Source: Hyaloraphidium curvatum SAG 235-1 (taxonomy: Eukaryota; Fungi; Monoblepharomycota). Taken from it: a stretch of DNA of 64,000 nucleotides. Below the pieces are notes generated by a model. The model had not been told where the DNA came from. It saw only the letters and a program-made list of their open reading frames with translations, and ran no database searches. Numbering within the stretch: the stretch's first letter is position 1; each line of letters begins with the position of its first letter. The DNA lies in contig JAIVFI010000042.1 of NCBI GenBank assembly GCA_025558095.1, positions 1 through 64,000 of the forward strand. Direction: 5' to 3'. Shown here piece by piece: positions 24,454 through 62,092 of this stretch. A program made the translations under genes and the position numbers.

Positions 24454-25442
24454 TCAGACGGTTGGGCACGCCGATTCGACCGTCAGGAACACGCCCGCAC
24501 CGCGCCGGATGCTCCAGATCCCGAACCCGACGGTGAACCCCGTGATGCACAGCGTCCTCACGGCCCCGAACGACACCGGGAACCCCAGGAACCGCACCCT
24601 CCTCTCGCCGATCCCCGCGAACGAGCCCAGCACGTCCGCGTGCCGCGCGAGGGCCGCCGACAGCGCCGCCATGCGCGCATCGCCGCGGGCCGCGCGCGCG
24701 GCGGCGGCGGCCGCGAGCTCCCGGGCCTCGCGCCGGGCCTGGAGGTAGAGGTCCGCGGCCGCCGTGACATGCGTGTTCCCGGTTGCGACGATGACGAGCT
24801 CCACGATGAGGTGGAACATCAGCATTAGCAGGCCAAGGAGGAAGCACAGAGGGATGCAGGACCCCGTCGCCTTGCGGGCGGGACGGTTAGAAGGGTAACA
24901 AACCAAAGCAAGGAGAACCGACAATGAAGACGGCGATGTACACAATCCAGCTTACTATGGTCGATGAGTACCACATTTGGGCCGAGCCGAGCTGCCTAAG
25001 AACGCGTTCATCAAAGGCCGCACCGATCCATGGGTGAAGTGCCTGGTAAGGTTCGGCATCCGGGAGTGAGTCCAAAGTCGCGCGCACGTCGTCCACGGAC
25101 GCCTCGAGGGCGTCCCGGTAACGTCGAATAAACGCTGCGAGGTGCAGCCTGAGGGCCCGGTGCGTCAGACGGGCATTCAAATTCAACGCAGAGCTACTGG
25201 GACTGAAGACACTCAAACCCCCCAAGATCTGATAGTCACATTGAAAGATAACTGCGGCAAGATCCAATCAGACGCAACGATGTCAACGTTAGACAACGGG
25301 GCGACATCCACTTACGGGCCAGCGAGGCCATGGCACAAGTCCACGGCGTTCCCCAAGTTGCATCTCCAAAGGTGAACAGCAGCGTCCAGAGTCCGGAGAA
25401 GTAGGTGATGAAGAGGTAAATGAATCGAGGTATAGTTTGCAA
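24454..25442 (-). pseudogene. 5'-truncated, intron-containing member of the 7-TM (GRL-like) family
   Basis: Two introns (GTAAGT...GCAG and GTCGGT...CTAAC...CAAG) join segments with the family motifs ARLTHRALRLHL, EPYQALH, GSCIP and RFLGFPVSFGAVRT...ESACP*. There is an in-frame stop just upstream and no N-terminal half. Confidence 0.7.
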
Positions 25443-40210: not shown

Positions 40211-40513
40211 GATCCTGGAGCCCCGAAGGCGCGTGCGGAAGGAGAGGCAACGAAGTTCGTCAGGCACGAAAGTCAGTCAGTCAGTCAAACGGGTCCCTGA
40301 CACCCAGCCACCACGGATCTCAATCGCCGTTCCCGCGAATCGGACGGGGTTCCGTTCTTCTGCGGGCTGACAGGGCCTTCCGCACTCCGTGGTCTTACTG
40401 CATCGGGCGCCGCTGTGGCCTTGCGAAGCGCGGCGACCACCTGCTTCGACACCCCTCGGACTCGAACTCTCTCGGAGACGCCACCGGCCCCATCTTCCCT
40501 TTCCGGAATTGCG

Positions 40514-41728: not shown

Positions 41729-41786
41729 CAAAGTTGGGTATTGCCAGACATGACAAAGGGCAGCTATGCAGATTCCAGATGGATCC
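41717..41786 (+). repeat. 70-bp direct repeat, copy A (RING gene last codons plus 3' UTR)
   Basis: GTTTATGTGTGACAAAGTTGGGTATTGCCAGACATGAC...ATGGATCC; about 60/70 identical to 43800-43869 by manual alignment. Confidence 0.85.
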
Positions 41787-42177
41787 CAGCTGGTCCAACG
41801 GCGGGCTACGTTGTGGCCAGTGGAGCTGGAACGCGCAGCACGCCAGCTAGACTCCTCCCGTACCGCGAAGGCGTCGTGTCGATCCACCCTACACAAGGAA
41901 CGGCGGTCAGCCGGCCTCGCCGCCGCCGCTGGAGGCCATCAGAAGGCGGGGCGTCGTCCGTGCTCGTACCGTGCCGCAGTCGTCGGCGCCACCGCGCGCC
42001 AGCCTTGACACCGCGCCGCAGAACGAAGCTCAACTGAGAAGGCGGATTCCCCGCAGGAGGACCGAAGCCGTCAGTATGCCCGCCGAAAGGGCCGTTGCCG
42101 ACGGGATTCATGATGCAAGGAAGGCCCCAAATACCGCCGGCCCTCACAACAGACCAAGAACCGCGAGAACCCACAGC

Positions 42178-43618
42178 ATGGAGGCCCTGTTCGACACCTC
42201 CGAGGTCCTGGCTCTCTTTCCTGCGCCGGCGCTGCCGCCGCCGCGCCTGTTCCCCGTGCCGGGCGGGAATGCTCCCGCCGACGCGGCGGGTCCGCTGGGC
42301 AAGGACGCGCTACTTCGCGGTCTCGGCTCGCCCCTCCTCCACACGCTCGTCGCACTGCAGCTTCGTCTATCACCTGTTTTCGTCGGCTACATCTACCCGG
42401 CCAGCATGACATCCTTCGCCATCGCGTGGGCGGTCACCGCCGCGTACATTCCGCGCTCGGGAATCGCTCTCTTCGCCCAGACTCAGTTTGCCGTCGGCGT
42501 CACCTTTTACACCTTCTACCTCGCCTGGATCGTATGGGGATCGCTGTCTGGGCTCATGGCTCGCGGCCGTTACCCTCGCGAAGAGCGACTCGGACTTGAG
42601 CCGGCATCCCCACGCGGTGCTGGCTCGTTGGGCCGAGCTTGTGAAACAGGAAAAGGGGGCCGACGGCGGCCACTTGGGTTTGCTCCGACACCTCGATGGC
42701 GACGACGCCTGCCCCTGCGGCCGAAACAGCTGCGCGGGTCGCATCGCCGGTCGCTCCGGTCTGCTGCGGCTTGTGGATGTTGTCGTCCGCATGGCTCTGG
42801 TTGCCTCTGTCGCACTTTTCGGGGGCTACACGCAGATAATCACCCTGCGCTTGTTCACGTGGTTCACGGCGGTTCCGGCAACCTTTGCGTCCCTCTTTGT
42901 GCTCGCGTCGCTTGCCATGGTCCTGTTTTCCGGCGTGTCGTTGGTGTCTGCCTCGCTGCCTGCCCTGGAACTTTCGCGGCGCCTCCACGTGCGGGCCGTT
43001 TCGGATGCGGTGTCTGCGGTGCTCGCGCGCCATTATGCCGCCCTATGGGGCCCGGAGAGGGATGCCGCGGAAGCCACTCTCCGTGGGTCAGAGCCGTACC
43101 AGGAACTCTGCGACCGCCTATCGGCGTACCGCGCAAGCCGTTTTACGGTACTGGGCGTGTCCTGGTACAGTTTCGTTGGACTCGTCGTCAGCCCGGTGCT
43201 CGCCATGATCGCCAACATTGTCGCCGGATCGTGCATCCCGGCGGTACACCCCGCAACGCTCTGCTACTTTGGTTACTTTTTCGTCCGCGAGCTCCTGGCG
43301 GTGGCCGCCGCCAACGCCCAGGTCTCGGGCACCGCCACAGTGCTCCGCCGCGCGGCACGCGAAGCCAACGCCCTCCTCGCGCGTGCCGCCGCGGAGGGGC
43401 TCTCGGACACGCGTGCGGCAAGGAGCCTGGACTACCACATGGGCCTGCTGGAAAAGTACGCCTGCGACCAGTCGGGAGCAAAAGTGCTGTCGGTCGAGGC
43501 CGACTGGGGATCTGCCAGGGCCATACTCATTGCCGTTTTCACGGTGCTTGTGGGGCTATGGTCGGTGCTGCGGTCGTCTGGGGTCTACCTGACACCGGAG
43601 CTGGCGTGCCCGTTGTGA
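42178..43618 (+). CDS. 7-TM (GRL/7TMIC-like) membrane protein; frame change near 42532-42583 (52-nt intron or frameshift)
   Basis: The N-terminal part is in ORF 41971 and the rest in ORF 42488. It shares HAVLARW, GDDxCxCxxxxCAG, ELSRRL, SEPY, IANIVxGSCIPA and the C-terminal AKxL...ExxC with 59665-61230. Confidence 0.75.
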
Positions 43619-43799
43619 GTGGAACAAGGTGGGGTATCGGACTAGCAGGGCGCATCATTCGGCTTTGCCGAGCTTTGCCTCTGTATGCCCAACAAGTGAT
43701 TGCTTTGCCGCAGTGACCCGGTTCCGTTCTTTCCCTCCGCTGCGCTTCCAGTGGGGGGCCGTTGCGTTTGAGTTGGGGCGTTTCTGCGGACGCGCTGAC

Positions 43800-43869
43800 G
43801 TTTATGTGTGACAGCGTTGGGTATTGCCAGACATGACACAGGGCGGCTATGTGAACTGCACATGGATCC
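43800..43869 (+). repeat. 70-bp direct repeat, copy B
   Basis: GTTTATGTGTGACAGCGTTGGGTATTGCCAGACATGAC...ATGGATCC. Confidence 0.85.
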
Positions 43870-43877
43870 TATTGTAG

Positions 43878-46800
43878 CTAAAAGGGTGTCGTCGAACTTG
43901 AGGGCGTCCGAGTGGTCGTGGCCTTCCAGCCCGGACCAAAGACGTCCGGCACTGGCACCGTGTACCTTCCCGAGACGGGATCGAACCCCCAGACGACCAC
44001 GGTTCCGTTGGCCAGCTGCACCATGCCGTGCTTGGGGCTCCCTCCGATCGCTAGGAAGGGCGGCACCAGGCCCGGCGGCGGCCCGCTGGCCTTGCCGGGC
44101 ATGATGAAGCCGTCCATCTTGCCCCCGCCCGTGAGCGCCAGGCCGAGCCCGTAGGCAGTGGCGACCTGGGCGACGTTGGGATCCGAACCCACAGGCTGGT
44201 TCCAGACGTACCGGTTCCACGGCCCGTTGTAGTTGCAGTTGTAGCCGTAGCTCGGCGTGTTTCGAACGCCGTAGATGAGGCAGCCCCCGACTGCAGCGGC
44301 AATGACGGACTTGTCGTACCCGACGCCCACGTTGCAGTGGTACGGCGAGCAAAGCCGTCCGTCCTGGAGGAGGTAGTACGTGGTCGCACCATCGGTAGCC
44401 AACTGCGCGAGAGGGTAGAAGTAAGCTTCGAGAGGGGGGCCCTGGTCCGGCAGGGCGTTGAAGAAGCGGCCGTCGTCGAAAGCATAGACGGTGTTGTTGC
44501 CCCCCGCCCCGATCAGCGCCACCTCCTGGGCGTCGGATCCCACCCCTCCAAACACCCTGACCGACCGGTCGTCGAGCAGCACAACGGTGTGGTTGTCGCC
44601 CGCAGCGATGGCAGTCGCCGGGCGGGGCACCGAGATGTCGGAGCGCAGGTTGCCGGAGCGGTCCCAGGCCACCACGGATCCGTCCTCGACGAGGGCGACA
44701 AAGTGGTCCAGGCCGCCCGTCATGGTGAGGATCTTGCGGACGGTCGCGGGCGTTGTCGTCGTGGTGGGCGTGATCGTCGAGGACGAGGACGCAGAGACGG
44801 TCCAAGTGACGCCTGCGTCCGAGGGCTGCTGGGGCAGATCAGAGGGGCGTGCCAAAAGACGGCGAGGCCATCGTGTCACCCACCAAAGCCGCCCTGCTCG
44901 CGGTCCTCGTCCTCGTCCTCGAATTGACGGCGGAGGGGACCGGCACGAGGTGTCCAGTTGTCCTGTTCCAGACGACCAACGAGCCGTCGTCCAGCTGCGC
45001 GATGCCGTGATCCTTGCCAGCCCCGATCGCAACCACGAAGCCGTCCGACACGGCCGCGGGCACTACGACGTTCTCGAACCCATACACGGTGCCGTTCTCG
45101 GCCAGCGCGAGGCCAAAGTGGTCCCCCGCCGCCAAGTCCACGATGCCCTCGGCCGAGAGTGAGTCGTTGAAGAACCACACGATGTCTTGGTACCAGTAGA
45201 GCAGCCGGCCCGTGTTCAGGATCCCCATTCCCGACCGCCAGCCGATGGCCATCTCACGCACGCTGTACGGCACCAGGTCGGTGAGGTAGTTGACGAAGAG
45301 GGTGCCGTTGCGCATGAGGTAGTACGAGGCTCCCCACGCGGCGCCGAGCGCGGCCACGTCGGCGCCGCGCAAACCCGGCGGGGGATGCTGACTGTCATCC
45401 CGCCAAGCGAGCGACCCGTCTTTCCGCATGATGATGGTCTGGTACACGCCGGCCCCGATCTTGGAGACGTTGGCGGCGCCGTTGAACTCACCCAGGTAGC
45501 CGAACGCACGCACGGTGCCGTCGTCCTCCAGCAGCACGGTGTGCTCGAAGCCGGCCGCGATCTCGACGACCGGACGGTATCCGCCGATGGAGCCAAGGAG
45601 GTTGCCCGAGGTGTCCCAGGCAACGACGGTGCCGTCGACACGCAGAGCGACAAAATGCGATGCCCCGCCCGTCATCGTCTTGAAGCTGCGCGCGGCGTGG
45701 GTGGTGCGTGTCCGCGATGTCGTGCTTATCCGCGACGCCGTCGTGGTCGCCGACAGGCTGGCCGTCCGCTGCTGGGTCATCGAATCAGTGCTCGAGTGCG
45801 ATACGAACAACCAGGAACGCACCGTAAAGGTCGCGGAAGAAGTGCGGGATGTCGGCGTGACCGTCGACGACGTCCTCGCGATCCGCGCGGTGACCGCCTC
45901 CGGCACCACCCCCAGGCTCCCCGTCGACACGTCCCACACCACCACCCTCCCGTCCTCCAGCTGCGCCATCCCGTTCCCGATCGCCGCCCCCACGCTCACC
46001 ACCCCTTCCTGCAGCACGGCCGGCATCACCGCGTCGCCAAACCCGTACACGGAGCCGTTGGCGGCCAGCGCGAGCGCGAACCGGAACCCGGCGGCCAACT
46101 GCACGATCCCCTCCGCCGACGCGCCGTCGTCGGCGTGGACCTCCCAGTACCCCTGCGTGGTGATGTTGTAGATGTCCTCGTACCAGTGCAGCAGCCTTCC
46201 TGAGGCGAGCACCGCCAGACCCGACCGCAGGCCGACGGACATGGAGAGGAAGCTGCGACCGGGGCCGAGGGTCGGGTTGGCCTCGTATAGGAGGGTGCCG
46301 TTGGCCAGGCGCACGTAGGCGGTGCCCCAGGTGGCATCGAGCTGGGCGAGTTCGCCGGGGGGGAGGTACGAGACCGGGGTCGGTTGGCCGGCAAAGGACC
46401 AGGCGATGGTGCCGTTGGCGTAGCCGACGAGGGTCAGGAATGCCCCCGCGCCGATGTGCGTCACCCCCGTCGCGCCGTGGAACGACCGCGCCCCGAAATT
46501 GTCCGGCCCGGGCTCGTCGAAGGCCGCGACGGTGCCGTCGTCCTGGAGCAGCACCGCGTGCAGCATCCCCGCCGCGATCTGGACCACCGGCCGGTCGGCC
46601 CTGACGTGGCCCCGCACGGCGCCCAGGTGGTCCCAGGCGACCACGGTGCCGTCGTCCCGGAGCGCGAGGTAGTGCCCGTCGCCGCCCGCCATGGTGACGA
46701 TCGAGGCGCCCGCGGGGGTGCGTCGGGTGCGGGTGGAGGTCAGCGTCCGGGATTGGGACGAGGTGGTCCGGCTCGAGGTCGACGTCGAGGGGGTGCGGCT

Positions 46801-48829
46801 CGCCGAGGCCGTCGAGCTCGTCGCCGTGCAGCTGGTCGTGGAGGGCGTCTGCAGGGGGCCTCGTGAGCACCGGGGACGGATTCGAACTTGGCCGACGCAC
46901 CAAAGTCGTGGAGCTCTCCGAGGCGGAGGTGCTGGTCCGGCTCTCCGAGGTCGTCGTGCGCGTGTCGCTTCTCGAGGCCGTCGAGCTGGTCCCGGTCAGG
47001 GAGCTGGAGGTCGGCGTGAACGAGGCCGTCGCCGTCAGGGAGCTGGAGCTCGGGGTGAAGGAGGTCGTCGCCGTCGGCGATCTGCTGGTCCGGGTCCGCG
47101 ACGAGGTGGCGGTGTCGGAGGTCGTCGAGCTCGTCCTGCTCTCTTTTGTGGTTGAGGACGTCCGGCTCGCCGAAGTCGAGGACCTGGTCCGGCTGTCCGA
47201 AGTCGTTCCGCTCTTCGAGGTGTTCGACCTGGTGCGGCTCAGCGAGGCCGTCGAGCTCGTCAAGCTCTGCGAGTCCGTCGATGACGTTCTGGTCCCCGAG
47301 GTGGTTGAGGACGTCCGGCTGGGCGACCTGGTCGAGCTCGTACGGGTCTCCGAGGCCGTCGAGCTGGTCCTGCTTTCCGAGGCGGTCGACGAAGTCGCCG
47401 TCCGGCTCGCGGTCGAGGAGGTGGCGGTGAAGCTGGTGCTCGATAGCGTGGAGGTCGAGGGCGTGAATGTAAGGCTCGACGAGGTGGCAGTCCGACTCGC
47501 GGTCGAGGAGGTGGCTGACAAGCTCGTGCTCGACAGGGTGGAGGTCGAGGGCGTGAATGTGAGGCTAGACGAGGTGGCGGTCCGGCTCGCGGTCGAGGAG
47601 GTGGCACTCAAGCTGGTGCTCGAAAGAGTCGAGGTGGAAGGTGTGAAGGTGAGGGTCGATGAGGTCGCCGTTTGGGTAATGGTCGTGGTCGTCGTCGGCG
47701 GAGGAGGCGGCGGAGGTGGAGGCGGCGGGGGAGGTGGAGGCGGCGGTGGAGGTGGCGCAGGAGGAGAGGTCGTCATGGGCGGAGGCGGCACCGGCCTAGC
47801 CGTGGTCAAACGGGCCGTCGTCGCCCTCGCCGTCGTCGGCCGCCTCACCACCGCCTTGGTGGTGACCACCCTCGCACACACGACCCCCGTTCCCGCGAAC
47901 CCGAACCTGCAAACACAGCTCCTCGCGGTCCCGTCCCCGATGCACACCGCGTTGGCCGAACACCGCGCGCACGGGTCCCCCGGGAGGGCCTGCACGCGCC
48001 GGATGAAGCTCTCGCCCCACAGCCCAGGGCTGACGACGGTCCCCCCCGGGCGGGGCTCGAAGGACCAGATGCCGACGATGGAGGCGGCGAGCCCCGTCCC
48101 GCGGAAGGCGGGGGCTCCCGACTGCCCCGCCGATCCGTCGCAGGCCACGGCGACCGCGGCGAGACCCGTCCGGAAGGGGCAGGTGGCGAAGCTCGGCGCC
48201 GTCCCGCCCAATCTGGAAGCGGGGTACCCCGCCACGGTCACCGCCCCCGCGTAGGGCGCCGGCCAGCGTCCCATCGATCCCGCGGCGACGGGCGCCGCGA
48301 GCTTGACCACGCCCCAGTCGTAGGCCGCCGCCGCCGGGTAGCCTCCCACCACGGCATTGCGGAACTCGGGCGGCACGTGCAGCTCCCTCCCCGCCACGCG
48401 GCCGTACGGCAGCCTCGCGCCCGCGCGGCCGACGGTGACCGCGACGGACTCGACCCATCCCGCCGGCCGGCCCCGCGCGGGATCCGGCGGGCGGAAGAGG
48501 CACGACGCCGCGGTGAGCACGAAGCGCGGGGCGATCAGCGCGCCGGAGCAGCTGAACGACCCGTAGCGGTCGCGGATCTCGAGGCGCGCGAGCGTGCGGA
48601 AGGGGAACGCGGCCGCGTCGGCCACGGCGCGGCGGCCGTCGGCGCCGGTCACGCCGCGCCGCACAACCTCGGGGCGGCTGAGATTGCGTCCGATGGAGGA
48701 GTTCCGGCCCGACGCCACCGCTGATCCGGCGAGGGAGAGCACGGCGAGCAGCACGAGGCCGGCCACCCCCCGGAGAGCGCCCCCGCCCCGCTGCCGGCGA
48801 ATCCCGCCCGTCCGCCCGGTTCCCTTCAT
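43878..48829 (-). CDS. Large secreted mosaic protein: trypsin-like (V8-type) domain with His->Ser, EGF-like, poly-Pro, Ser/Thr mucin repeats, three RCC1/BLIP-II propeller modules; 3 introns
   Basis: Signal peptide; CSGALIAPRFVLTAASC, YDWGVVKL, GQSGAP; CSANAVC...CVCRFGFAGTGVVC; three repeats of GGxxH(Y/F)xALxxDG(T/S)VVAWD / IAAGxxHxVxLxDD. Confidence 0.8.
47395..47775 (-). repeat. Coding tandem repeat (three ~90-bp units TATSSxLTFTPSTSTLSSTSxxATSSTASR) plus a poly-proline tract
   Basis: Visible directly in the translation of ORF 45785..48874. Confidence 0.85.
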
Positions 48830-50883
48830 CTCGGCGCTCCTTTCTCTCGATTCCGTCGGCAGCGGACCTTGCACGCTGGCATCGCGTGGCCGGTCGAGAA
48901 ATGACCGAGCCCGCCTAAACCGAACTGAGGGCTATGTGGCGGAGCATCCCGGGACAAAGCAGACGGCCAAGTGCTGGCGGTCGACGGGATGCGACTTGTA
49001 ACCTCGGCAGCGATCCTTTTTTCTTCTCTTCCTCTCGATTAGCTTGGGGCAGGATTGGGCCGGAGGCAGGAGGCGAGTTATCCTCAGGATGCGGCACGGG
49101 TACGCCAGAGTCACCTCATCTTGCGAACGGCAACGGCAGGATGTCCCGACGGAGCTGGAGCGGGAGCTACACTACGGGACCAGGATGTGGGGACCATGGT
49201 CAGGGTGGGAGTGGGACTTCTATCGTACGCCGATCCGCCCCACGGCCAGTCCGTCCGACCGAAATACAATTGAACCGCGATCTAGGAAGAGATCCGCCCG
49301 CAACAGCCATTTGGGGTCGTCCGGCGGGAAATACGTGCGGACCCAGGTCACTGAACAAATGAAGCACGTCGCTACGCGAGCGCAACGTCGGGCGCGGCCA
49401 TCGCCGCACGTCGCGCTGAAATGCCAAGCTAGCGCCTGATCCTCGATGATGGCCACACCTTGGCCGTAGGCAACATGCCTGGTTTGGCTCGTGTTGACGG
49501 GTCGGCGGGAGAACATTCCCTGGTTCGCAGACCTCCTTTCCAGGACCGCCTGAGCCGTGTCCCGCTTGTACCGGGGCCCCATTTCGCGCTGCGACGCGGC
49601 CGAGAATTGAGCGGAGGCGCCCCCGCGGCCCCGAACGGCGCGGCGCCGGTCCCGTCGCACTGTGGTTCGATCGGCGGCCGCGGCGTTCGGGCTCACCGCG
49701 CTCTGTCGACAGGCTGGCGACGGCCATCACGCTGCTCGTCGCGGCGTTCACGGTGCTCCGCGGCTCGGGCGTGTTTGTCACGCCCGAGACGGCGCGTCCG
49801 TACAGCGGTGACCGCAGACCAGGCCATGCGCAATGCACCCTCGGGGTCCGAAGCACACCAAACCCTCACCGCGCCACGATCTGGCCCGTCCGCCCGTGAT
49901 GAAGCTTCTCCTTTAGGGGCGTTTCCCCGGCCTGCCGAGCAGTACGGCGCCGCCTGCGGGGAGCGGCGGGCGGAAGCGCGGGGTCGAAGGGGCCTGCTCA
50001 GCGCTCCCCCCGTTCGCGAGGCAGAAACGGTGGCGGGGACTCCGCTCGCGGGCGGGTGGTGGCGGGGCGCACGCAGTTGCATGAGAACGCGGCTGCCGCT
50101 GGGAGCCGGCGGGAGACGCCGGACCGGGGCGGTCCTCGACAGTGCAGCGCCGTGCATGCAGCGGACGATTCTCTTGCCCTCCTGAACGAGACGCTACGTC
50201 ATAGAACCACTCGCGCGGCGCCCGCAATCGCGGGCCCCATTCCCCATCCCGCCACCCAGCCCGCCCGGCGCGACGTCCCAACCCCGCCCGCCGCAACCCC
50301 GCTCCCTTGCCACACCCCATTCGTCACCGCCGCCGGAAGCCACCCCTCCGTAGGCTCGCCCTGCAGATCCCACTCCGATCCCGGGCCCGGGACCGCGGGC
50401 TGGTTCCCGGCCCGGGCGAACCCAATTGTCTGACCGCGTCGCCGACCGCCCTGCCGCGGCGCACGCCGACCCGCCCCGCCCGGCGCTTTCCTTCCTTCCC
50501 CTACCGACAAATGCAGACCCAGGTCGGCCCGGTGGCCGGCGTGCCGAGGCCAGTGAGTGCCGTTGCGTCGCCGAGCGCCCCCTCCCTCCCCAGCCAAGCT
50601 GTGGCAATTCGAGGGTCGCCGCCGCGGTGGGTCCGTGCCGCCCGGAGCAGCACGCGGGCAGCTGGTGCACCGCGCGAGGGCGCAAGAGTCGTGGAAGATG
50701 TATCGTGTGCCGGGGCGGGTGTGCCGCTGGCGGGGCGTGCGTTCGTGGGGGCGCGGGGCGGGGCCGAATGTTTGGAGCGGATAACGGGACGTTCGACGCG
50801 GGAGTGAGGGGGCGCTTCTCGAAACCGCCCCGACAATGGTGCCGCCGTTTCATTCTCCCCATTCCCACAGCAACGGCGGCGCG

Positions 50884-51990
50884 ATGAAGCAGAAGCAGCG
50901 CGGCCGGCCCCGCGAGTACGAGACGCTGGCGCACGTGCGGCCGGGGGTGCGCGTCGCGCGGCACACGCCGACCGGCGAGATCCGCTGCGTGCGGTCGTTC
51001 CCCAAGCCGCCGCCCGGCAGCTGCGCGGCCGCCGTCGACGCGGCGCGCAGGGAGGCCGAGGGCGCCGCGCGGCTGCTGCGCGACGACGCCGCAGGCCACC
51101 CCGGCGTGCCCGCCTTCAAGGACTTCAAGGAGACCGACCGCGGGTGGCACCTCGTCACAGAACACGTAAACGGGCCGGTGGGCACCGCGGGGGGTCGCCT
51201 GCATGAGCATGCTGACGCCTTCCTCTTCCCCCTTCCCTCCTTCCCCTCCCCGGCCCCCTCCCCTGTCCAGGACCTGCCGGCCCTGCTCGCCGCGCACCGC
51301 GGCCCCCCGCCCGAGCCCTTCGCCGCGGCGCTGGTCGCCGCCATCCTCCGCTCGCTCGCCTTCCTCCTCGCAAAGGGCCACGCACTGCCCCCGCTGCACC
51401 CGCACGCAATCGCCCTCCGCTCCCCGCACGACCCCTCCTCCGCCGTGCTCGTCGGCATCGCCTGCCCCGCCTCACCCGCGCCCTGCGCCCGCCGCGCCTC
51501 CACCGGCGGCCCCGACGCCCCGGCACACGACTCGGCATTCCTCCCTCCCGCCAACCTGCCCCCGGCCCGATCAGCGGTGCTCCTCGCCGCCCGCCTGGCG
51601 TACTATCTCCTCACCTCCCAGCCCCCGCTGCCGATCGCCCACCCGCCCTTCCCCAAGGGCCCCACCCCCGAGGCCCGCGCCTTTGTCCGCTTCCTCCTTC
51701 ACCCCGACCCGCCCTCCCTCGGCGAGGCCCTCGCGCACCCGTGGCTCGCGCCCTTCGGCGCCTCCGACGAGGGCACGGCGGTCGAGTTCGACGCGCGCCG
51801 CGGGCTCCGCCCCGCATCCGCCGAGCCGGCGCCGGGGTGGGACGACTCGGCGTGCGACCTGTCGGCGGACGCGATGCGGGAGATGCCGGCCGCGCCGTCG
51901 CCGACGGTGGGCGCGTGGAGGGGGGACGAGGCGCCGGAGCTGCCGGGGTTGATGGCGTTCCTGCGGGTCAGGCTGCATTCGGCGTCGTGA
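50884..51990 (+). CDS. CAMK-like pseudokinase; intron ~51178-51270
   Basis: Kinase scaffold (VARHTPTGEIRCVR, HPGVPAFKDFKET, HLVTEHVNG, EARAFVRFLL, EALAHPWL) but no VAIK Lys, HRD or DFG. Confidence 0.65.
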   Translation: MKQKQRGRPREYETLAHVRPGVRVARHTPTGEIRCVRSFPKPPPGSCAAAVDAARREAEGAARLLRDDAAGHPGVPAFKDFKETDRGWHLVTEHVNGPVGTAGGRLHEHADAFLFPLPSFPSPAPSPVQDLPALLAAHRGPPPEPFAAALVAAILRSLAFLLAKGHALPPLHPHAIALRSPHDPSSAVLVGIACPASPAPCARRASTGGPDAPAHDSAFLPPANLPPARSAVLLAARLAYYLLTSQPPLPIAHPPFPKGPTPEARAFVRFLLHPDPPSLGEALAHPWLAPFGASDEGTAVEFDARRGLRPASAEPAPGWDDSACDLSADAMREMPAAPSPTVGAWRGDEAPELPGLMAFLRVRLHSAS

Positions 51991-52766
51991 GGGTCGGGGG
52001 GGGGGGCGGGGCGGGGGACCGCGGGCACGGTCTGCGGGCTGCAAGGGGGAGAGCGAGGCGCCCTGGTGGCGCCCGCATGATGTAGAACATGGAAGTCGTG
52101 TATCGACGCCGTTCTCTTGTTGATTGACCTGGGTGTGCATGTCACTCGTCTTACCCGCGCACCGTTGCATTTTGCAGCGCGAGACATCGCCAAGCCCGCC
52201 CGCCTTCCCTGGCCACCGTCCAATCCCCGCAACAGTACAGGGAAACTGTCCAAGCAGAGAAAAAGAGGCTACCGCAGTACAGAACCCACCGTTGATTGGC
52301 TCCGGTGCGAAAGCCGCGACCGGCGTCCCATTCCCCGACGCCCCCGATCCATCGCCAGGCCATCGCCCGGGCCGCGCATCCGAGGCACCCAATCGCAGCC
52401 AACGAGGAGAAAATGGACACATCACGGTAGGGACCCCGTCCCCGACGCGGTCCAGCGGGTAGCGCACGACCGAGGGCGACGGGGAGGTTGCGGACGGGTG
52501 GGGATGGCGGGAGGAGCACGGGAGGGAGTAGTCCGCGTTCAGGAGGGGATCCATTGCAGCGGGAAGACGGGCGGTGGTGGTGACGGTGCGCGGTCGGCGG
52601 GAACCGCAGGGGATGCTGCCCGCTCGGGTCCCGTGAGCGCTTTCGAGGGCCAGCAGGTGCAGACAAGCGACCGTTGCGGGTCCGTGGGCCGAGGGAAGGA
52701 AGGTGCGGAGGGCAGCTACGGCGTCGCGGACGTCCCGCCCGTAATCTGCTGTCGCCGGTAGCCCTT

Positions 52767-52777
52767 ACAATATAGGT
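52767..52777 (+). promoter_or_regulatory. TATA-like element about 30 nt upstream of the U6 start
   Basis: ACAATATAGGT at about -34 to -24 from the U6 5' G, in otherwise GC-rich DNA; mirrored at ~54609-54619. Confidence 0.5.
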
Positions 52778-52800
52778 GGCAACCTTTGCTACATTTCCTT

Positions 52801-52922
52801 GACATCTCCTTCGGGAGCTCTGTCTATACAAAATTGGAAACGATACAGAGAAGATTAGCATGGCTCCCTGTGCAAGGATGACACGCAGCGACGAGTGGAT
52901 AGCCCCTCGGGGCAACGATTAT
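52801..52922 (+). ncRNA. U6: U6 spliceosomal snRNA, atypical copy 1
   Basis: 5' stem-loop GACATCTCC-TTCG-GGAGCTCTGTC; core AAAATTGGAAACGATACAGAGAAGATTAGCATGGCTCCCTGTGCAAGGATGACACGCA with the ACAGAGA box and AGC triad. The 3' end is estimated. Confidence 0.9.
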
Positions 52923-53674
52923 GCTGCGCGTGGATACGAATAGACCGCCTCGCTCGAAATGCGATCCTCCGGAACGTCCCTCGCCTCTCGCGTCCCGATG
53001 ACGGAGAAACGTCAACGCCCACCTCGTAAGCGCCGCCTCTGACTGCGGCACGCCACTCGATGGTAGATGCCTCTCGCTACTCGAACCCGTGGCTGCGCGT
53101 CGCTGCTATGGTTGCTGCGCAGATGTGCCGACGCGGTGCCGCCGCACGCAGTAAACCCAGCCGTCCGCCGCTGCACTCGCCGGTTCCGGCACAGAACGTC
53201 CGAAACAGAACGTCCGGCCCTGCCGTCGGCTGCAATCGCCCAGGCGCATGCCCTCGATCGCGTCGCGCTCCTGGACCCATGGCCGCCTCCGACGCCTCTC
53301 CACCCAAAATCCTCCTGGCCCCGCACTGTGCCTCGCCCACCGGCGCAGGCAGTCTACAATTGCTTGCGCCGCGAGCGCGTCCACGGCGGAGCCCACGAGA
53401 GCCAACAGGCGGGAAATCTCCTCCGGAACCGTGGACGCGCCATCTCGTTGTCCTGACGGGAGCAAGACAGCCATTGCGAAGTTGAGGGTGTTTCCAGTCA
53501 CGTTACTCGAGAGCGCCTCGTTGCCAACAACGATCAATGAGGTCAGCGCTGGCGTACCCAGTCTGATTTGCAACGGCGCGCTTTCGACAACAGAGAATCT
53601 ACTCAGAAGCATCCTGGCAAACGAGCTTGTGCGACGCCCAGTCCGCAACTACATCATCCAACGCCCTCCGTCAC

Positions 53675-54319
53675 CTACGGCTCCCATGTGCCCTCCACGA
53701 TCGCCTTCAGCTTCTCGACCTGTTCCAAATTCCACGAGTTGAGTCGCCATCCCAGCGATTCCAGCATGGCGATCAGAGCAAGCATGTCCGAGGCCTCCTC
53801 CGCGGTCGGCGGTTCACCCACAACCCATTTGTCCACCCCGGGCAGGAGCATGGCCACTTGCTCCACCCGTACGGTCAGCAGAGGAGTTCCGCCACAGATC
53901 CGCCGCACCGTGTCGGCTTCGCGATGGGGGAGAGGCCACAGGCGGAGCTGCCGGATGGTCAGCTGCCGCAAAGTGTCGCCAGGGGTGCGGGCGGCCAGGA
54001 CATCCGCGTCGAGGCCCCCAACCTCGAGGCTCACGAGCGAGGGGAGCTCCGCAAGGGCCGACCAGGTGTCTCCGTCCGTGTGGTCCGGATCCGTCGGAGG
54101 CGGCCATGGGTCCAGGAGCGCGACGCGATCGAGGGCATGCGCCTGGGCGATTGCAGCCGACGGCAGGGCCGGACGTTCTGTTTCGGACGTTCTGTGCCGG
54201 AACCGGCGAGTGCAGCGGCGGACGGCTGGGTTTACTGCGTGCGGCGGCACCGCGTCGGCACATCTGCGCAGCAACCATAGCAGCGACGCGCAGCCACGGG
54301 TTCGAGTAGCGAGAGGCAT
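53675..54319 (-). pseudogene. LRR/F-box-like gene 3' fragment; its first ~75 codons are duplicated on + at 53067-53294
   Basis: WSALAELPSLVSLEVGG...TLRQLTI looks LRR-like; no evident N-terminus. Confidence 0.4.
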
Positions 54320-54947
54320 CTACCATCGAGTGGCGTGCCGCAGTCAGAGGCGGCGCTTACGAGGTGGGCGTTGACGTTTCTCCGTCATCGGGACGCGAGA
54401 GGCGAGGGACGTTCCGGAGGATCGCATTTCGAGCGAGGCGGTCTATTCGTATCCACGCGCAGCATAATCGTTGCCCCGAGGGGCTATCCACTCGTCGCTG
54501 CGTGTCATCCTTGCACAGGGAGCCATGCTAATCTTCTCTGTATCGTTTCCAATTTTGTATAGACAGAGCTCCCGAAGGAGATGTCAAGGAAATGTAGCAA
54601 AGGTTGCCACCTATATTGTAAGGGCTACCGGCGACAGCAGATTACGGGCGGGACGTCCGCGACGCCGTAGCTGCCCTCCGCACCTTCCTTCCCTCGGCCC
54701 ACGGACCCGCAACGGTCGCTTGTCTGCACCTGCTGGCCCTCGAAAGCGCTCACGGGACCCGAGCGGGCAGCATCCCCTGCGGTTCCCGCCGACCGCGCAC
54801 CGTCACCACCACCGCCCGTCTTCCCGCTGCAATGGATCCCCTCCTGAACGCGGACTACTCCCTCCCGTGCTCCTCCCGCCATCCCCACCCGTCCGCAACC
54901 TCCCCGTCGCCCTCGGTCGTCCGCTACCCGCTGGACCGCGTCGGGGA
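54092..54947. repeat. Right arm of the 856-bp inverted repeat
   Basis: See 52439-53294. Includes the U6 gene and the first 38 codons of the cupin gene. Confidence 0.95.
54464..54585 (-). ncRNA. U6: U6 spliceosomal snRNA, atypical copy 2 (identical to copy 1, convergent)
   Basis: Reverse complement of 52801-52922. Confidence 0.9.
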
Positions 54948-55680
54948 TGAGGTGGCGCGGGCGACCTCGCTGGTGCGCTACCTCCCCGGCGGCTCCTTCC
55001 CGCCCCACACCCACGGCGGCGGCGAGGAGTTCCTCGTCCTCGAGGGCGAGTTCGGCGACGAGCACGGGCTCTACCCGTCGGGAAGCTATGTTCGGAACCC
55101 CGTGGGCTCGCGGCACAACCCCCGCGTCGGCCCCTCGGGCTGCCTCATCCTCGTCAAGCTGCGGTGGATGCGCGGGGACGAGCCTTACGTTTCGTGGTCC
55201 GCGGACACCCGGGAGCTGAGGACCGAGTCGCCGTACCCGGCGGTGGGGGGCAGCTGGCCGCCCGTGGACCTGCCGCCCGGGACTCCCGAGGAGAAGGGGG
55301 CGACGACGGTGTACTACTCCCCGAAGTCGAAGAGCGGGACGGAGAGGGTGAGGATCGTGGAGCTGGGCACGGGGCCGGGGCAGGTGCGGGCGTTCGACGT
55401 GCCCAGGAAGGAGATCGACAGCGGTGGGCATTCCTTTCCGTTACCTGCTATCCGCAGCTTGCTGACACGACCTGCTGCTCGGCCCCCATGCCTGATAGGG
55501 GGCATCGAGATCCTCGTGCTCGACGGCTCGGTGTCGTTCGACGGCGAGGCGTGGGGACGGTGGGACTGGGTCCGGCGGCCCGCGACGAGCAAGGCGGGGC
55601 GGATCGCGCTGGCGTGGGAGGAGGACGCGAAGGTGTTTGTCAAGACGGGGTACCAGGAGGGTTGGACGGCCGAGGTGTGA
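54832..55680 (+). CDS. ChrR-like cupin (Cupin_7) protein; intron ~55423-55498
   Basis: LDRVGDEVARATSLVRY...FPPHTHGGGEEFLVLEG.F.DEHG.YP.GSYVRNP.GSRH.P...GCLILVKL; second cupin repeat GGIEILVLDGS...WVRRP...FVKTG. Confidence 0.85.
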   Translation: MDPLLNADYSLPCSSRHPHPSATSPSPSVVRYPLDRVGDEVARATSLVRYLPGGSFPPHTHGGGEEFLVLEGEFGDEHGLYPSGSYVRNPVGSRHNPRVGPSGCLILVKLRWMRGDEPYVSWSADTRELRTESPYPAVGGSWPPVDLPPGTPEEKGATTVYYSPKSKSGTERVRIVELGTGPGQVRAFDVPRKEIDSGGHSFPLPAIRSLLTRPAARPPCLIGGIEILVLDGSVSFDGEAWGRWDWVRRPATSKAGRIALAWEEDAKVFVKTGYQEGWTAEV

Positions 55681-56041
55681 TTGCCGGATGGTTCCTTGAG
55701 ACAGGCAGGGTCGGTAGTCGGTGCGAGCGGGTTCTTGGACACGGCATGGGTATCTTGATTGTTTGCTCCTCTTGCGCAATTCAGACGCCGTCGATCGCGG
55801 TCCAGGGCGGTGCTGGACGGTCGTGCGCAGGCCGCACGCCGAGTGGCCGGTCTTGCGTGTCCCGGCATCCAACCCAGCATCAGGGACCGCGCAAAGGCTC
55901 TGCATTCTCTACGATCCTTCCTGCCGAATATCCATCTCCAACTTCTGCTGGCGCTCGTCTCGAAAGGTTATTGAGCCTGATTTGTCTCCACCTCCGGTCG
56001 GCCTCAGCCACAGACCGAGCTCCCGCCGTCAGCAAAGCGCG

Positions 56042-57995
56042 ATGGCTCTCCGCGCGGCGGCCGCCGCCGCCTCGGCGCTCCTGGCCTTTGCGGCCCTCGC
56101 GCCCGCCGCCTCCGCCGCGGTGCCGCCGTCGTCCGCGCCCTTTGCGCCGCCCTTCCCCGTGTCCGATTTCTCGGCGACCGAATCGCTCTCGCCGACGATG
56201 CAGCTCTTCTGGAAGGTCGACGCCGCCGCGGGCACGATCACCGTCGGCGTCGCGTCGCTGCAGGCGCCCGGCTGGGCCGGCGTCGGCTTCTCGGACAACG
56301 GCGGCATGACCGGCGCGGACATCGTGACCGGCAGGCTGGCCGCGGCCTCGGGCGCGGCGATCTCGGCCGGGTCGACGCCGGGCTTCGTGGTCGAGGACCG
56401 CTACGCGACGACGTTCGCGGAGCCCAAGGTCGACAGCTCGCCGTCGGCCACCGCCCTGTTCGGCTTCCAGAACGCCACCATGACCGCCTTTGTCTTCCGC
56501 CGCCCGCTGACGGCCCGCTGCAACGGCGAAAGCACCTCCGTCTCGGCGACCCGCGCGCAATGGGTCATCTTCGCCCACGGGGAGTCGAATGAGTTGGCGT
56601 ACCACGGCGACAACCGCGGGCAGAAGCACATCTTCCTCCAGCAGCCCGTGCTCACCTTCCCGGACCTGCCCGCGGACGTGCTCAACGTGACCATCGCGAC
56701 GCCGCCGGTCGTGGTGCCCCGCAACAAGACCACCATGTGGGTTGCCGACGGCGTCGGACTGATGGCGAACACGATCCTGACTTCTTTGCCTGAAGGTACT
56801 GCTACTCGCTCCACCAGCTCCCCTCGGACCGCCCCTACCACGTCATCCGCGAGGAGCCCGTCATAACCTCCAAGCGCGCGCACCACATGATCCTCTACTC
56901 GTGCACCGCCGCCCAGGTCGAGACCGCCCGCTCGCGGCTCAACGGCTCCGACGTGGCGTGCAACTCGTACGGAGCGCAGAGGGAGCGCAAGTTTGCCAAC
57001 CCGTGCACGGCTTTCTTCACCGGTTGGGCTCTGGGGGGCAAGGAGGTGGTGCTGCCGGAGGGGGTCGGGAGGCCGATGGGGGGCGACAAGGGGCCGTCAT
57101 TCGTTCTTCTGGAGATGCATTTGGACAACGTCGCCGGGGAGCCTGGTGGGTGTCGATGCCGGCAACCAATCCGCGTTCCCGGCTCATTCCTCCCCGCTCC
57201 CGTTGCCAGACACCACCGACTCCTCCGGCATGCGCCTCAGCTACACCCCCAACCTCCGCGCGCAAGACATGGGCGTCCTCACCCTCGGCGTCTTCACCCA
57301 GCAGATCGTCATCCCTCCCCAGACCTCCAACTACACCATCCGCTCCATCTGCCCCTCGGACTGCACCTCCCAGCTCTCCCAGAAGAGCACCATCTTCGGC
57401 GCCGTCCTGCACATGCACACCGCCGGGCGCAGTATGCGCACCAGGATCATCCGCAACGGCACGGAGCTCGAGCCGCTGGCCCAAGCGCACTACGACAATG
57501 CGTACCAGGGTTACATCCTCTCGGACGGGAGGGAGGAGCTGAGACCAGGGGATACGGTGGTGACCGAGTGCACGTGGAACACCGTTGGGAGGAGCGAGAA
57601 CGTGACGGGCGGGGAGGAGACGAGCCAGGAGGTGGGTTGCCTCTCGCGCGCGGGATTCCCGCACTTCAGCTGACCCGCCCCCCCCCCCCCCCCCCGCGCT
57701 GCAGATGTGCTTCTCCTTCCTCAACGTGTTCCCGGCCCCTTCGATCGACGTGTGCATGACCACCGCGACCGACCCCAAGGTCGCCTTCTGCCCGCCCGCC
57801 GACGCGCAGGTGGACCAGGTCAACTTCCGCAACTTCCTGCGGCTGCAGACCATGCCGCAGGGCGTGCAGGAGTGGCCCGTGACGGGGAACCAGTGCGGGC
57901 CGGTGATAGTGTCGAGGCCGTCGGCGGCGGCGAGGTGGGGCGCCGGGTTGGTTGGAGCGGTGGGGGCCGCGGTGCTGGCCCTGGCGGTCTTGTGA
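56042..57995 (+). CDS. DBH-like copper type II monooxygenase (DOMON + Cu2_monooxygenase N/C), MOXD1-like; 3 introns
   Basis: Signal peptide; DOMON GWAGVGFSDNGGMTGADIV; HHMILY, LEMH, DSSGMR, LHMHTAG, GEETSQE|MC; hydrophobic C-terminal anchor. Confidence 0.88.
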
Positions 57996-58166
57996 GCGCG
58001 GGAAGGGTGTAAATTGTTGTTTATCGTAGCGATATCAGTGCAATCAGGAACATCTGCGGGCCGCCGAGCACAGGATCTCAACGACGCCCCCGGCCCGCTC
58101 ACCTCTCAACCGGTGCAGACCCTTCTTCCGGACTGCTTTCGAACTCTTGCGCTCCCCTCCGAAGCG

Positions 58167-59330
58167 ATGAAGCACCTCCCCGATCAGAATTCCATGCCCG
58201 CTCCTGCCTCGGAGAGGCCTGCCGAGGACGGGCGGCGCCTGCCCCCGGAGCTCCTCGGTCGCGTCGCGAAGCTCGGCTACTGCGAACCGGGCTTGGTCTC
58301 GATGGGCGCTGCCAAAGACAAAGACTCTTGGACCTGCCAGGACCTCGTGACGTTCATGCTCGCCTGCCGGGATTGCTACTACCTCGGCCTGCCGCTCCTG
58401 ATGAGGCACCTCGACCTCGGGTCGGCCGACGAGAACGACGATGTCGTCGTCTCGCAAGATCAGTGGCGCGCTTGCCTCGGCGACTGCGTCGGAGCGGACA
58501 AGTTTGCGCTGGTTCGATCCGTGCATTTCGTTTCCTTCGAGGACGACGGATCCGACTGCGCAGCACAGCTCTCGGTGCTGCGGCGGTGCATTCCGAACGT
58601 GGTCGACCTGAAATTTTCTGCTTACTTTACGCCCGAAGTTGCGGAGAGCTTTTGGTCGCTCTTCCAGGATGCGCGAAGTTTGGAGGAGGTCGAGATCACT
58701 GCCTTCGGCCCCTTCCACCGGCCGCTCGAGGCGGGTTTCAGGCTTCCGCGACACCTCCGCAGCTTCCGCATTTACTTTGACGAAACGTTACTGGACGACG
58801 TTGTTCCCTTTCTTGACGATCTCGGACGGCAGGCCCATTTGCTGGATGATTTCAAGCTCGGTGGACCTTTGTTGCCTGATATGGGGCTTGGGACTGCTTT
58901 GATTGCCAAAATGACGTCGGCATCGGTCTATTGCGACGATTTGGACTGGCTTTCATCGTTCCCGGGTTTGGCCATACGCGACCTGCGGATCGAGGAGGCG
59001 GAGGAGGTGACCGAGGACGCTTGGTCCGGGCCACCGCTGCACTCCGTCCGGAAGGTCACGATGCGACTTGCCAGGGCGTACGCGATCCAACCTGTGTTGG
59101 CTCATTTCCCTTCGCTCACGGAGATCACGATCTACGACGCCGTTCCTTGGTCCGAGGGAAACGCGGAGGATTTCGAGGTCATCGCGGCCAAGATTCGCCA
59201 ATCGAAGCTCGTGCAACTCCGAGCCCTGAACTGCGACAGAAAGAAATGGGAGGACTCGGATCGGGAGAGCGAAATGTGGCTTTCCCTTCCAAAGATCGAG
59301 TGGAAGTGGCGGGGCGAGCGGTGGCGCTAG
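58167..59330 (+). CDS. F-box-like/LRR-like protein
   Basis: RRLPPELLGRV...FMLACRDCYYLGLPLL N-terminus; LxxLxI repeats (SLEEVEI, HLRSFRI, SLTEITI). Confidence 0.6.
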   Translation: MKHLPDQNSMPAPASERPAEDGRRLPPELLGRVAKLGYCEPGLVSMGAAKDKDSWTCQDLVTFMLACRDCYYLGLPLLMRHLDLGSADENDDVVVSQDQWRACLGDCVGADKFALVRSVHFVSFEDDGSDCAAQLSVLRRCIPNVVDLKFSAYFTPEVAESFWSLFQDARSLEEVEITAFGPFHRPLEAGFRLPRHLRSFRIYFDETLLDDVVPFLDDLGRQAHLLDDFKLGGPLLPDMGLGTALIAKMTSASVYCDDLDWLSSFPGLAIRDLRIEEAEEVTEDAWSGPPLHSVRKVTMRLARAYAIQPVLAHFPSLTEITIYDAVPWSEGNAEDFEVIAAKIRQSKLVQLRALNCDRKKWEDSDRESEMWLSLPKIEWKWRGERWR

Positions 59331-59664
59331 CCGGGGAGAGCAGATAGAGATTCGTTGGTCGTGCTACGTTGTGTCTGTCGGCGCTCCTCGGTTAGCGTTT
59401 GGTCCCCGGGAGGCAGGCTTTTCAAATGGCCAGCTGTCCGACGCTTGGCCTCTCCTCCCTGCTCCTCCTCCGCAGCTTTCTTGCTCACGAGAAAAGAGCA
59501 GGCATTAAAAGTTGAAGCTGGCAATGGGACGTTGAAGTCGGATCGGAAGGACGCCGATGCTGAAGGTGAGATTTGGCTCTCTTTTCGGACAGCGTGGCAC
59601 TAGGTCAACAAAGACAGATAGTAGAGATTCATCAACTTCTGCAACAGGCCTGAAAGCGACCGCC

Positions 59665-61230
59665 TCACGCCCCGCAGTAGCTCTCCAGCACCACCCTGAC
59701 CCCCAGCCCCCTCAGCAGCCCGTACACCGTGAACCCGACTGTCAGCGAGGTCACCAGGAACGCCCTCGCGGTGCCGAAGCTCGCCTCGAACCCGAGGAAC
59801 TTGGCGGGATCGCCTGCCGTGGAAAACGTGCGTATGCGGTCCGCGTGGCACGCAAGCGCCGCGCGGATCGCCATCCGCTGCGGTGAGGGAGAGTGCAGGG
59901 CGTCGGATTCGGCGGCTGCGACGAGCAGCGCCTCGGCCCGAATGCGGGCCTGCAGTAGCAGCCCGCGCACGCTCGCGATGCGGGCGTTGGCGGCGGCGAG
60001 CGAGGTGATGTACACCATGTGGTAAACGATCCACCAGGCGATGTAGGCGATTTGCCACGCCGGGATGCAGGACCCGACGACGATGTTGGCGATCCCGCCA
60101 GCGATGCATCCGGCGAGGGAGAGCGTGATGATGCTGGATATAATGCGCCAGGCGCGGGTCTGTCGGTGCTGCGACCAGTCCGCGGCGAGATGCAAGTACA
60201 GCCGCGCGTAGGGTTCGGAGTCAAGCAGGTCTGAGGTCGACTTGCCGGGGTCGCCGTCGCCCTCGGCGGAGAACGTAGGTCCTTCTGCTGCGCCGCCCTT
60301 AGCCGCGTCCGCGTCCGCGTCCGTCACCGTTCCGCAAGCAACCAGCAGCCCCCTGTAGCGATCGAGAAGGGCCGTCAACGCCCTGCCCATGGCTCGGCGC
60401 TGAAGCCTTCGCGACAGCTCGACCACGGGGGGGTTTGGGTTGCGGAATAGCGCGCCGCATGTCGCGACCCACGCCGTGGCGCTGCCCGCGATCGCCAGGG
60501 CCCCCACGAGGGCCGACCACCAGGTGGAGAACCAGACTGCACCGTAGGTCACTATCGGGGTCCAGCACGAGAAGAGTGGGCATATGAGGACGAGAAGAGC
60601 GACTCGGATGCCGCTTTCGGCTAGGAAATATGCGGCGGCGCGCCCGGGCAGGGACCCAGCGCACGTTTGCGCGGGGCACGTGCAGTCGTCGTCGCCGGTG
60701 ACGTGGACGACGAGCGACGGCGGGTGCCGCGGGCCGCATCCGTCCGTTTCCAGCCGGCAGAGGTCAATCCAGCGGGAAACAGCGTGCAGCATGTGGTTCG
60801 ATGGGTCCGTCACGGCAGCCCAGCCGCGGAAGGTCAAGGCGGCGACTCCTAGAGTGACCAGGCCAAGCGAGGCGGCGAGGGCGGCGGTGCCCACGGCTAT
60901 TTGGGCCGCCGAGAAGGGCACATCGACGACGGCGGGTAGGGCGGCCATCGACGCGAGCGCGGCCACCGTCGAGACAATCGCCGGAAGCGGATAGAGCGGG
61001 CGGCTCCTCGGCCCGAGCGCCGCGAGAGCCACACGGGCGCAGAAACCCAGCAGCGGCGATGCCCGGGCGGCTGCGGCGGCCAGTGACGCGTTGGTCGGTC
61101 GCGTTGCCGCACGAAGCGCGCAAGCGCTTTCGGCCGCATCGTCGGGCGGCGCAGGCTCGCCCGGCCACGGTGGCGCGGGAGCAGAAACGGCCGGCAGCAC
61201 CGCAAGCAGCTCGGCGGCAGTCAGCGCCAT
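59665..61230 (-). CDS. 7-TM (GRL/7TMIC-like) membrane protein, intact and intronless, 521 aa
   Basis: Seven hydrophobic segments, no signal peptide, long loops after TM2, TM4 and TM6, and AKFLGFEASFGTARAFLVTSLTV before/in TM7. Three paralogues in this window. Confidence 0.8.
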   Translation of the reverse strand: MALTAAELLAVLPAVSAPAPPWPGEPAPPDDAAESACALRAATRPTNASLAAAAARASPLLGFCARVALAALGPRSRPLYPLPAIVSTVAALASMAALPAVVDVPFSAAQIAVGTAALAASLGLVTLGVAALTFRGWAAVTDPSNHMLHAVSRWIDLCRLETDGCGPRHPPSLVVHVTGDDDCTCPAQTCAGSLPGRAAAYFLAESGIRVALLVLICPLFSCWTPIVTYGAVWFSTWWSALVGALAIAGSATAWVATCGALFRNPNPPVVELSRRLQRRAMGRALTALLDRYRGLLVACGTVTDADADAAKGGAAEGPTFSAEGDGDPGKSTSDLLDSEPYARLYLHLAADWSQHRQTRAWRIISSIITLSLAGCIAGGIANIVVGSCIPAWQIAYIAWWIVYHMVYITSLAAANARIASVRGLLLQARIRAEALLVAAAESDALHSPSPQRMAIRAALACHADRIRTFSTAGDPAKFLGFEASFGTARAFLVTSLTVGFTVYGLLRGLGVRVVLESYCGA

Positions 61231-61322
61231 TCTGTCCACGGATCCGGGGTGAGCAAGCGGGGACGTTGAGCGATCTTTGCTCCTTCCAAACAGAAGGACG
61301 CGGTGCTCCTCACACGTCAAAT

Positions 61323-62092
61323 GGAGGCAGGCCCATTTGCTGGAGGAGTTCAAGATCGGAGCATCTTTGTCGCCCGATCTCGAAATCGGACCGGGCTTGG
61401 TGTCCAAAATGGCGTCTGCGTCAGTTTCGTGCGAACATGTGGACTGGATTTCTACAATTCCCGGGTTCGCCGCGCGCGAGCTTCGAATTGAAGACGGCGA
61501 GCAGGTGTCCGACGGCACTTGGTCTGAGCTGCCTCTACACTCGGTCCGGAGGATCACAATGTGGCGTGCGCACTCATTCGTGATCCACCCTCTTCTGGTC
61601 AAGTTCCCGTCGCTCACGAACATCGTGATAATCTCGCCTATTCCTTGGAGCGCGGGGGCCGCCGGGTATTTCGAGAAGATCGCGACCAAGATCCGCCAGT
61701 CGGGGCCTTCCCAAGATCGAGTGGAAGTGGAGCGATGAGCGGTGGCGTTAGCAAGGAGCGCAGATAGAGATTCTTTTCATCGTACTGTGTTGTCTCTCCG
61801 TGGTCTTGGCGTGGGTGCAAATGAAACTTTAGCTAGGTCTCTCTCCCGGGGCGGCAGGCTTTTCAGATGGCCATCTGTGCCCGCACCTCGCACCGCCTCC
61901 CTGCGTGGCCCCTTCCTCCTCCTATTTCCCACCAAGATCCTACAATCCAGGCTCACGCACGTCAGAGCCTTGTTCTGCGACAGAACTGCATGGGAGGGAT
62001 CGGATTCTGAACGCATTTTGTGGCTCTCTCTCCCCAAGATTGAGTGGTCGTGGTCTTGAGAACCGCCGTAGCAAGGAGCGCAGATAGAGATC
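61323..62092 (+). pseudogene. Diverged direct duplicate of the 3' part and downstream region of the F-box/LRR gene (58824-59630)
   Basis: RQAHLLEEFKIG...KMASASV vs RQAHLLDDFKLG...KMTSASV. Shared CAGATAGAGAT and GGCAGGCTTTTCARATGGCCA. Each copy ends with a further C-terminal remnant (IWLSF / LWLSLPKIEW). Confidence 0.8.

Follow-up and report, generated by a model that had tools for sequence, protein, structure and literature searches.

A large, divergent 7TMIC-like protein family in the fungus Hyaloraphidium curvatum: a putative chemosensory channel repertoire

Introduction

Why would a single stretch of a fungal genome carry several genes resembling the chemoreceptors of insects? The stretch in question, hereafter called “the window”, comprises all 64,000 nt at positions 1 to 64,000 of contig JAIVFI010000042.1 from Hyaloraphidium curvatum SAG 235-1. 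A preliminary description had recognized in it four copies of a seven-transmembrane (7-TM) protein family laid out like the odorant (OR) and gustatory (GR) receptors of insects, and had regarded them as its best candidate for an undescribed system. The superfamily concerned, 7TMIC (insect OR/GR, GRL, DUF3537, PHTF), has in fact already been described, including single members in chytrids; what is new here is a branch of it and the expansion of that branch. We put the probability at roughly 60% that the family is a lineage-specific, massively expanded and divergent 7TMIC branch acting as chemosensing ligand-gated channels.

The function of 7TMICs is known almost solely from animals. Whether non-animal members are ligand-gated channels matters for understanding how smell and taste arose in insects, and the H. 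curvatum family offers both a natural alignment of great depth and many genes that can be cloned to address this question. Hundreds of selected paralogues in a culturable fungus suggest an independent use of the fold for a large sensory or recognition repertoire. H. curvatum has no flagellum and its lifestyle is unclear (PMC6899921). What purpose could such a repertoire serve in a cell unable to swim?

Predicted topology and fold

Do these proteins have the 7TMIC fold? First, we analysed 105 family members, to which the sequence figures below refer. All of them have seven hydrophobic segments (mean Kyte–Doolittle hydropathy 1.3–2.0), which form helices in both of our structural models, and none has an N-terminal hydrophobic stretch that could serve as a signal peptide, as had been noticed for the two long copies. 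The N-terminal side carries 13.7 Lys and Arg residues, as compared to 2.3 on the other side, and the bias is present in 105/105 sequences. This positive-inside bias predicts the 7-TM, N-in/C-out topology that the preliminary description had expected, instead of an N-out topology like that of G-protein-coupled receptors (GPCRs). GPCR or opsin identity does not fit the same bias or the Foldseek probability of only 0.08 for the A2A receptor. The intracellular loops span 76, 72 and at least 57 residues, as compared to 6, 16 and 6 for the extracellular loops.

Second, in the model of copy 4, the long helices of TM4–TM6 (residues 237–261 with 267–300, 340–386, and 391–445) reach into the cytosol, and TM7 is split: DSSP assigns a helix at 450–471 (S7a), strands at 478–479 and 481–482, and a helix at 485–508 (S7b). 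The model of the second member agrees. The FxGF-like segment, previously placed before the split TM7, actually lies between S7a and S7b, in the β-hairpin. As regards the N-terminal re-entrant TM0 of the superfamily, helices at 47–71 precede TM1, and the OR alignments begin at model residue 43–62.

Conservation follows this architecture. TM1–6 are variable (2.9–3.3 bits), while the hairpin, S7b and the C-tail are conserved (1.7–1.9 bits). S7b is almost free of charge (0.02 Lys/Arg and 0 Asp/Glu per helix) and contains Thr497 in 104/105 members. We infer that Thr497 corresponds to the Thr of the TYhhhhhQF motif, which would place Ser/Gly/Thr at the Gln position (504) and Val/Ile/Leu at the Phe position (505); the gate of MhOR5 is likewise Val. 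In addition, the first cytosolic loop holds four family-specific invariants (His176, Cys183, Cys185 and Cys190), and one Cys in the TM5–6 turn and one in the C-tail both face the extracellular side. The simplest readings of this conservation are a candidate Zn site (His/Cys3) and a candidate Cys388–Cys519 disulfide.

Third, insect OR/GR chains were the best Foldseek matches for two divergent members (28–31% identical), with the same ranking for both, in line with the structural resemblance foreseen from the sequence. The TM-scores, which derive from Foldseek alignments and not from TM-align, were 0.24–0.44, as compared to 0.47–0.74 for accepted 7TMIC members and a superfamily criterion of about 0.5 or more. 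Scanning the copies in the window and 40 paralogues against Pfam returned nothing relevant, a PDB sequence search gave chance matches only, and no Pfam or PDB hidden Markov model (HMM) linked the family to 7TMIC. The topology, loop asymmetry, long TM4–6 and split TM7 that characterize the superfamily are all predicted here, and we hold the 7TMIC fold to be very probable.

Two neighbours in the ESM Atlas deserve mention. For two divergent members, the language model ranks TMEM39 (PF10271) first among named neighbours (0.94); it is possibly a cryptic 7TMIC, or a chance match, and we found no paper linking it to the OR/GR fold. An unnamed 932-residue cluster (106 members, most commonly from Chlorophyta) matches residues 4–512 with a TM-score of 0.54, above any OR/GR, and could be the nearest relative, carrying an extra domain.

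Size, diversity and selection of the family

How large is the family? The first ten matches sampled were all “hypothetical proteins” of H. curvatum at NCBI. A 40-member profile yielded 880 candidates in the genome, and all 86 that were scored matched strongly, nearly all at full length. The genome holds 333 occurrences of the DNA pattern encoding C-[PAST]-C-x4-C-x-G, as compared to 85 for the control; the excess of 248, divided by the sensitivity of the pattern (72/108), corresponds to about 370 genes. When 1.84 billion representatives were searched with HMMER, 463 matched at an E-value of 1e-3, 410 at 1e-10 and 296 at 1e-30. Among the best 150 of the 463, which were examined, H. curvatum was the source of 26 of the 30 looked up. 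Taking the candidates, the pattern count and the HMMER counts together, we estimate roughly 250–400 genes; the suspected genome-wide expansion is thus upheld by an estimate short of a full census.

The genes are very diverse (median pairwise identity 27%), unannotated, mostly compact and dispersed over most contigs, and 82% of the tree length lies in terminal branches. Whole-gene comparisons of 14 close paralogue pairs gave ratios of nonsynonymous to synonymous substitution rates (dN/dS) of 0.20–0.58, indicating purifying selection. The hundreds of paralogues, these ratios and the relics in the window support the birth-and-death repertoire proposed from the window alone. Small tandem clusters are common: at seven fetched loci (L011, L016, L017, L021, L027, L002 and L060) another family gene lies no more than about 2 kb away. 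Annotated members of 605–788 residues (P0004, P0013, P0059, P0086, P0109 and P0126) could reflect fusion, tandem duplication or the merging of gene models.

Does the family occur elsewhere? Three full-length members were obtained from run SRR26194948 and a partial one from an ENA metagenome, and therefore the family is not a quirk of one assembly. At about 30% identity, these environmental members still carry the hallmark residues. Their contigs have a GC content of 54–55%, as compared to 61–75% in the window, and fungus-like neighbouring genes (a YVC1-type channel, hamartin and a DIL-domain gene 65–73% identical to H. curvatum). Their source is probably unsequenced relatives. Word searches over 5.8 billion proteins, a visibly insensitive method, found H. 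curvatum proteins only, and no member was confirmed by pattern scans of metagenomes.

The copies in the window

What does the window itself contain? With copy 4 as the query, tblastn matched the other three named loci at E-values of 1e-31, 3e-18 and 2e-6, and the family HMM recovered all named window loci (1e-120 to 1e-12) with zero matches in the reversed window. The four loci are indeed paralogous; their count was incomplete, as a fifth locus retains TM7 only (Table 1). A tblastn match at 55991–56284 was rejected as the signal region of a DOMON/monooxygenase-like gene. The motifs H-x2-GDD-x-C-x-C-x4-CAG, GSCIP and terminal ExxC occur in both long copies as reported, while copy 3 has KVLSVE in place of the (K/R)F(L/F)GF segment attributed to both. 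For copy 4, 71% of the sampled words are present in the RNA-like run X1.

Table 1. Family loci, their hallmark elements and flanking repeats in the window.
Feature	Position	Strand	Evidence and remarks
Copy 4, intact member, 521 residues, single exon	59665..61230	-	Open reading frame, tblastn, AlphaFold model
Copy 4 His176-Cys183-Cys185-Cys190 cluster, cytosolic TM2–TM3 loop	60655..60705	-	Invariant in 105/105; candidate Zn or redox site, putative metal binding
Copy 4 GSCIP turn, TM5–TM6, extracellular, Cys388	60061..60075	-	Cys 99% conserved; short strand in both models
Copy 4 S7a helix (450–471), β-hairpin (478–482), pore-type S7b helix (485–508)	59707..59883	-	DSSP; lowest entropy among TM segments
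Copy 4 terminal Cys519	59674..59676	-	105/105; candidate disulfide partner of Cys388
Copy 3, family member, 479 residues once frame corrected	42178..43618	+	RNA contig, profile search, dN/dS
Copy 3 His/Cys3 motif	42689..42739	+	Sequence
Copy 2, 5′-truncated, TM4 to C-terminus	24454..25442	-	Matches P0072 residues 242–533 at 64–82%
Copy 1, relic with an internal deletion, retaining about 53 codons at the start and about 50 at the end	8654..8960	-	HMM; about 1.2 kb missing as compared to paralogue L012
TM7-only scrap, fifth locus	49714..49794	+	HMM, E 5e-8
70-bp direct repeats (41717–41786 and 43800–43869, 86%) bracketing copy 3	41717..43869	+	Repeat comparison
Copy 4 flanked on both sides by degenerate repeats (about 70%) of the 3′ end of its left neighbour	58828..62091	+	Repeat comparison

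Is copy 3 a pseudogene? In the assembly it is not a single open reading frame, with a frame change in the CCC run at 42573–42575. A contig from run X1 spans all of copy 3 and lacks base 42573; two introns of adjacent genes are spliced out of this contig, which marks it as RNA-derived. Read without this base, copy 3 matches the whole profile (E-value 4e-108), and its dN/dS against the nearest paralogue, P0053, is 0.28. A near-identical paralogue as the source of the contig is ruled out, the closest being 72% identical. The most likely reading is therefore that copy 3 is intact and transcribed, the extra base being an assembly error or an allelic indel; in view of the RNA contig, we rejected a pseudogene.

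Copy 2 was searched exon by exon. Its two apparent frameshifts were rejected by reading the junctions: both read as GT..AG introns, at 25315–25252 (64 nt) and 24922–24871 (52 nt), each with a CTAAC branch-like word, and their excision would preserve the frame. An Old Yellow Enzyme gene starts 45 bp away, at 25487.

The 3′ end of the left neighbour is repeated around both long copies, which fits segmental duplication or ectopic recombination. Flanking direct repeats are ruled out as a general route of spread, as they were present within 1.5 kb at only 1/17 other loci, as compared to 5/306 control pairs. Just upstream of copy 3, at 41841–42125, lies a dispersed repeat of about 255–285 bp with at least 13 copies genome-wide (78–94% identity). 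Here the RNA contig shows nine substitutions and two insertions, and may follow another repeat copy; no family gene lies beside L073, the most similar of the other copies. Copy 3 also adjoins a Sel1-SH3-RING protein gene (40415–41728, plus strand) and an RCC1-repeat gene region on the minus strand, in which the RNA contig is spliced at GT..AG introns 44826–44883 (58 nt) and 45769–45822 (54 nt). The DOMON/copper monooxygenase-like gene (56042–57900, plus strand) was identified by eye from its translation.

Proposed mechanism and alternative explanations

How might such a repertoire work? By analogy with ORs and GRs, four subunits would assemble through the TM4–6/S7a anchor, and a central cation pore would be formed by the S7b helices. 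Val/Ile/Leu at 505 would close this pore, and Ser/Gly/Thr504 would take the place of the Gln of GRs. A small molecule bound in the variable extracellular half of TM2–6 would then open the pore, each channel being tuned by its own variable pocket. The cytosolic His/Cys3 cluster probably binds Zn, either structurally or for redox tuning, and a Cys388–Cys519 disulfide probably fastens the pore helix at its end to the TM5–6 turn. The repertoire would detect many environmental chemicals, such as nutrients and the products of neighbours or parasites, and, as the cell lacks a flagellum, its output would concern physiology (growth, spore release, dormancy or defence), not chemotaxis. We consider it more likely than not that the members are ion channels, and the odds that they sense external chemicals are about even. 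Tentatively, and slightly short of even odds, a fungus without flagella may have independently evolved an insect-scale ligand-gated chemosensory channel repertoire that has a cytosolic metal/redox module and a disulfide-tethered pore helix of its own, as the first non-animal OR/GR-style combinatorial chemical sensing.

Could the channels instead recognize non-self or parasites in an immune- or incompatibility-like manner, with their opening leading to defence or cell death rather than “taste”? Fungal recognition families often grow by such expansion, and the deep divergence of hundreds of paralogues along long terminal branches, the many relics, the dispersal on most contigs and the non-motile host would all suit this role. 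However, the five window loci share no common partner gene, the whole-gene dN/dS values are below 1, and we know of no 7TMIC in a recognition role. We consider this explanation unlikely.

A 7TMIC fold might also belong to proteins that conduct no ions: they could be scaffolds or reside in internal membranes, which may be true of PHTF and DUF3537, or they could transport small solutes or metals using His/Cys3. Only animal 7TMICs have been shown to be channels, and the fungal family lacks a conserved gate motif, possesses an invariant cytosolic metal-like site and an N-terminal extension absent from ORs/GRs, and ranks TMEM39 first by features. Against this, the anchor hairpin and S7b show the strongest conservation, which is also the case in pore-forming members, the S7b helix is uncharged with its invariant Thr, and hundreds of variants would be superfluous for a scaffold; a non-conducting or transport role is rather improbable. 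An unrelated seven-helix fold resembling ORs/GRs through convergence or a model artefact would account for the low TM-scores and the missing sequence link, and Foldseek searches call for caution with helical bundles, but it is very improbable, as the two divergent members agree in ranking, the alignments cover the whole OR/GR chain, the split TM7 with its hairpin, the loop asymmetry and the conservation pattern concur independently of score, and GPCRs and opsins score nowhere near the top. Chemosensing by ligand-gated 7TMIC channels remains our preferred explanation.

Comparison with known 7TMICs

How does the family relate to known 7TMICs? The insect receptors compared (AaegOR10, 8v02; AgamOR28, 8v3d; MhOR5, 7lic; Gr43a, 8jm9; BmGr9, 8vc1; Orco, 8z9a) share with it the seven N-in TM helices, the long TM4–6 anchor, the S7a-hairpin-S7b arrangement, divergent TM1–6 with a conserved TM7, and a large birth-and-death repertoire. 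The identity is 6–14%, and the fungal proteins, of about 500 residues, differ in their long first intracellular loop (75–76 residues) with His/Cys3, N-terminal extension, extracellular Cys pair and C-terminal strand after S7b. Unlike for the ORs, there is no evidence of an Orco-like partner in the fungal family. The TYhhhhhQF motif occurs in 0/105 members, and PF08395 (7tm_7) and PF12056 gave no match on the genome, although the control set was also without matches and hence uninformative. Because this motif and these Pfam matches are absent, the family is, by sequence, neither GR proper nor a strict DUF3537 member.

Literature searches found no description of the H. curvatum family, and a tree-of-life 7TMIC screen does not mention Hyaloraphidium. 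Plant DUF3537 proteins (PF12056; 4–12 genes per plant genome) are language-model neighbours (0.90–0.93) of the same topology class, without an HMM match. Class-B/PHTF-like 7TMICs share the elongated TM2–TM3 loop (Himmel 2023, 10.1101/2023.08.30.555482), with no sequence link found. The chytrid proteins SpunGRL1 and SpalGRL1 are fungal 7TMICs with, by eye, a similar hairpin (GFxV[DE]) and an S7b ending in W-x3-R; SpunGRL1 has about 430 residues and no His/Cys3 motif. Reported 7TMIC counts are one gene per genome in chytrids, at most six in protists and 4–12 in plants (Benton 2020, PMC7746228). The H. curvatum family is far larger than any non-animal count that we found in the literature (1–12 genes per genome): where each Spizellomyces genome has one GRL gene, H. 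curvatum has hundreds.
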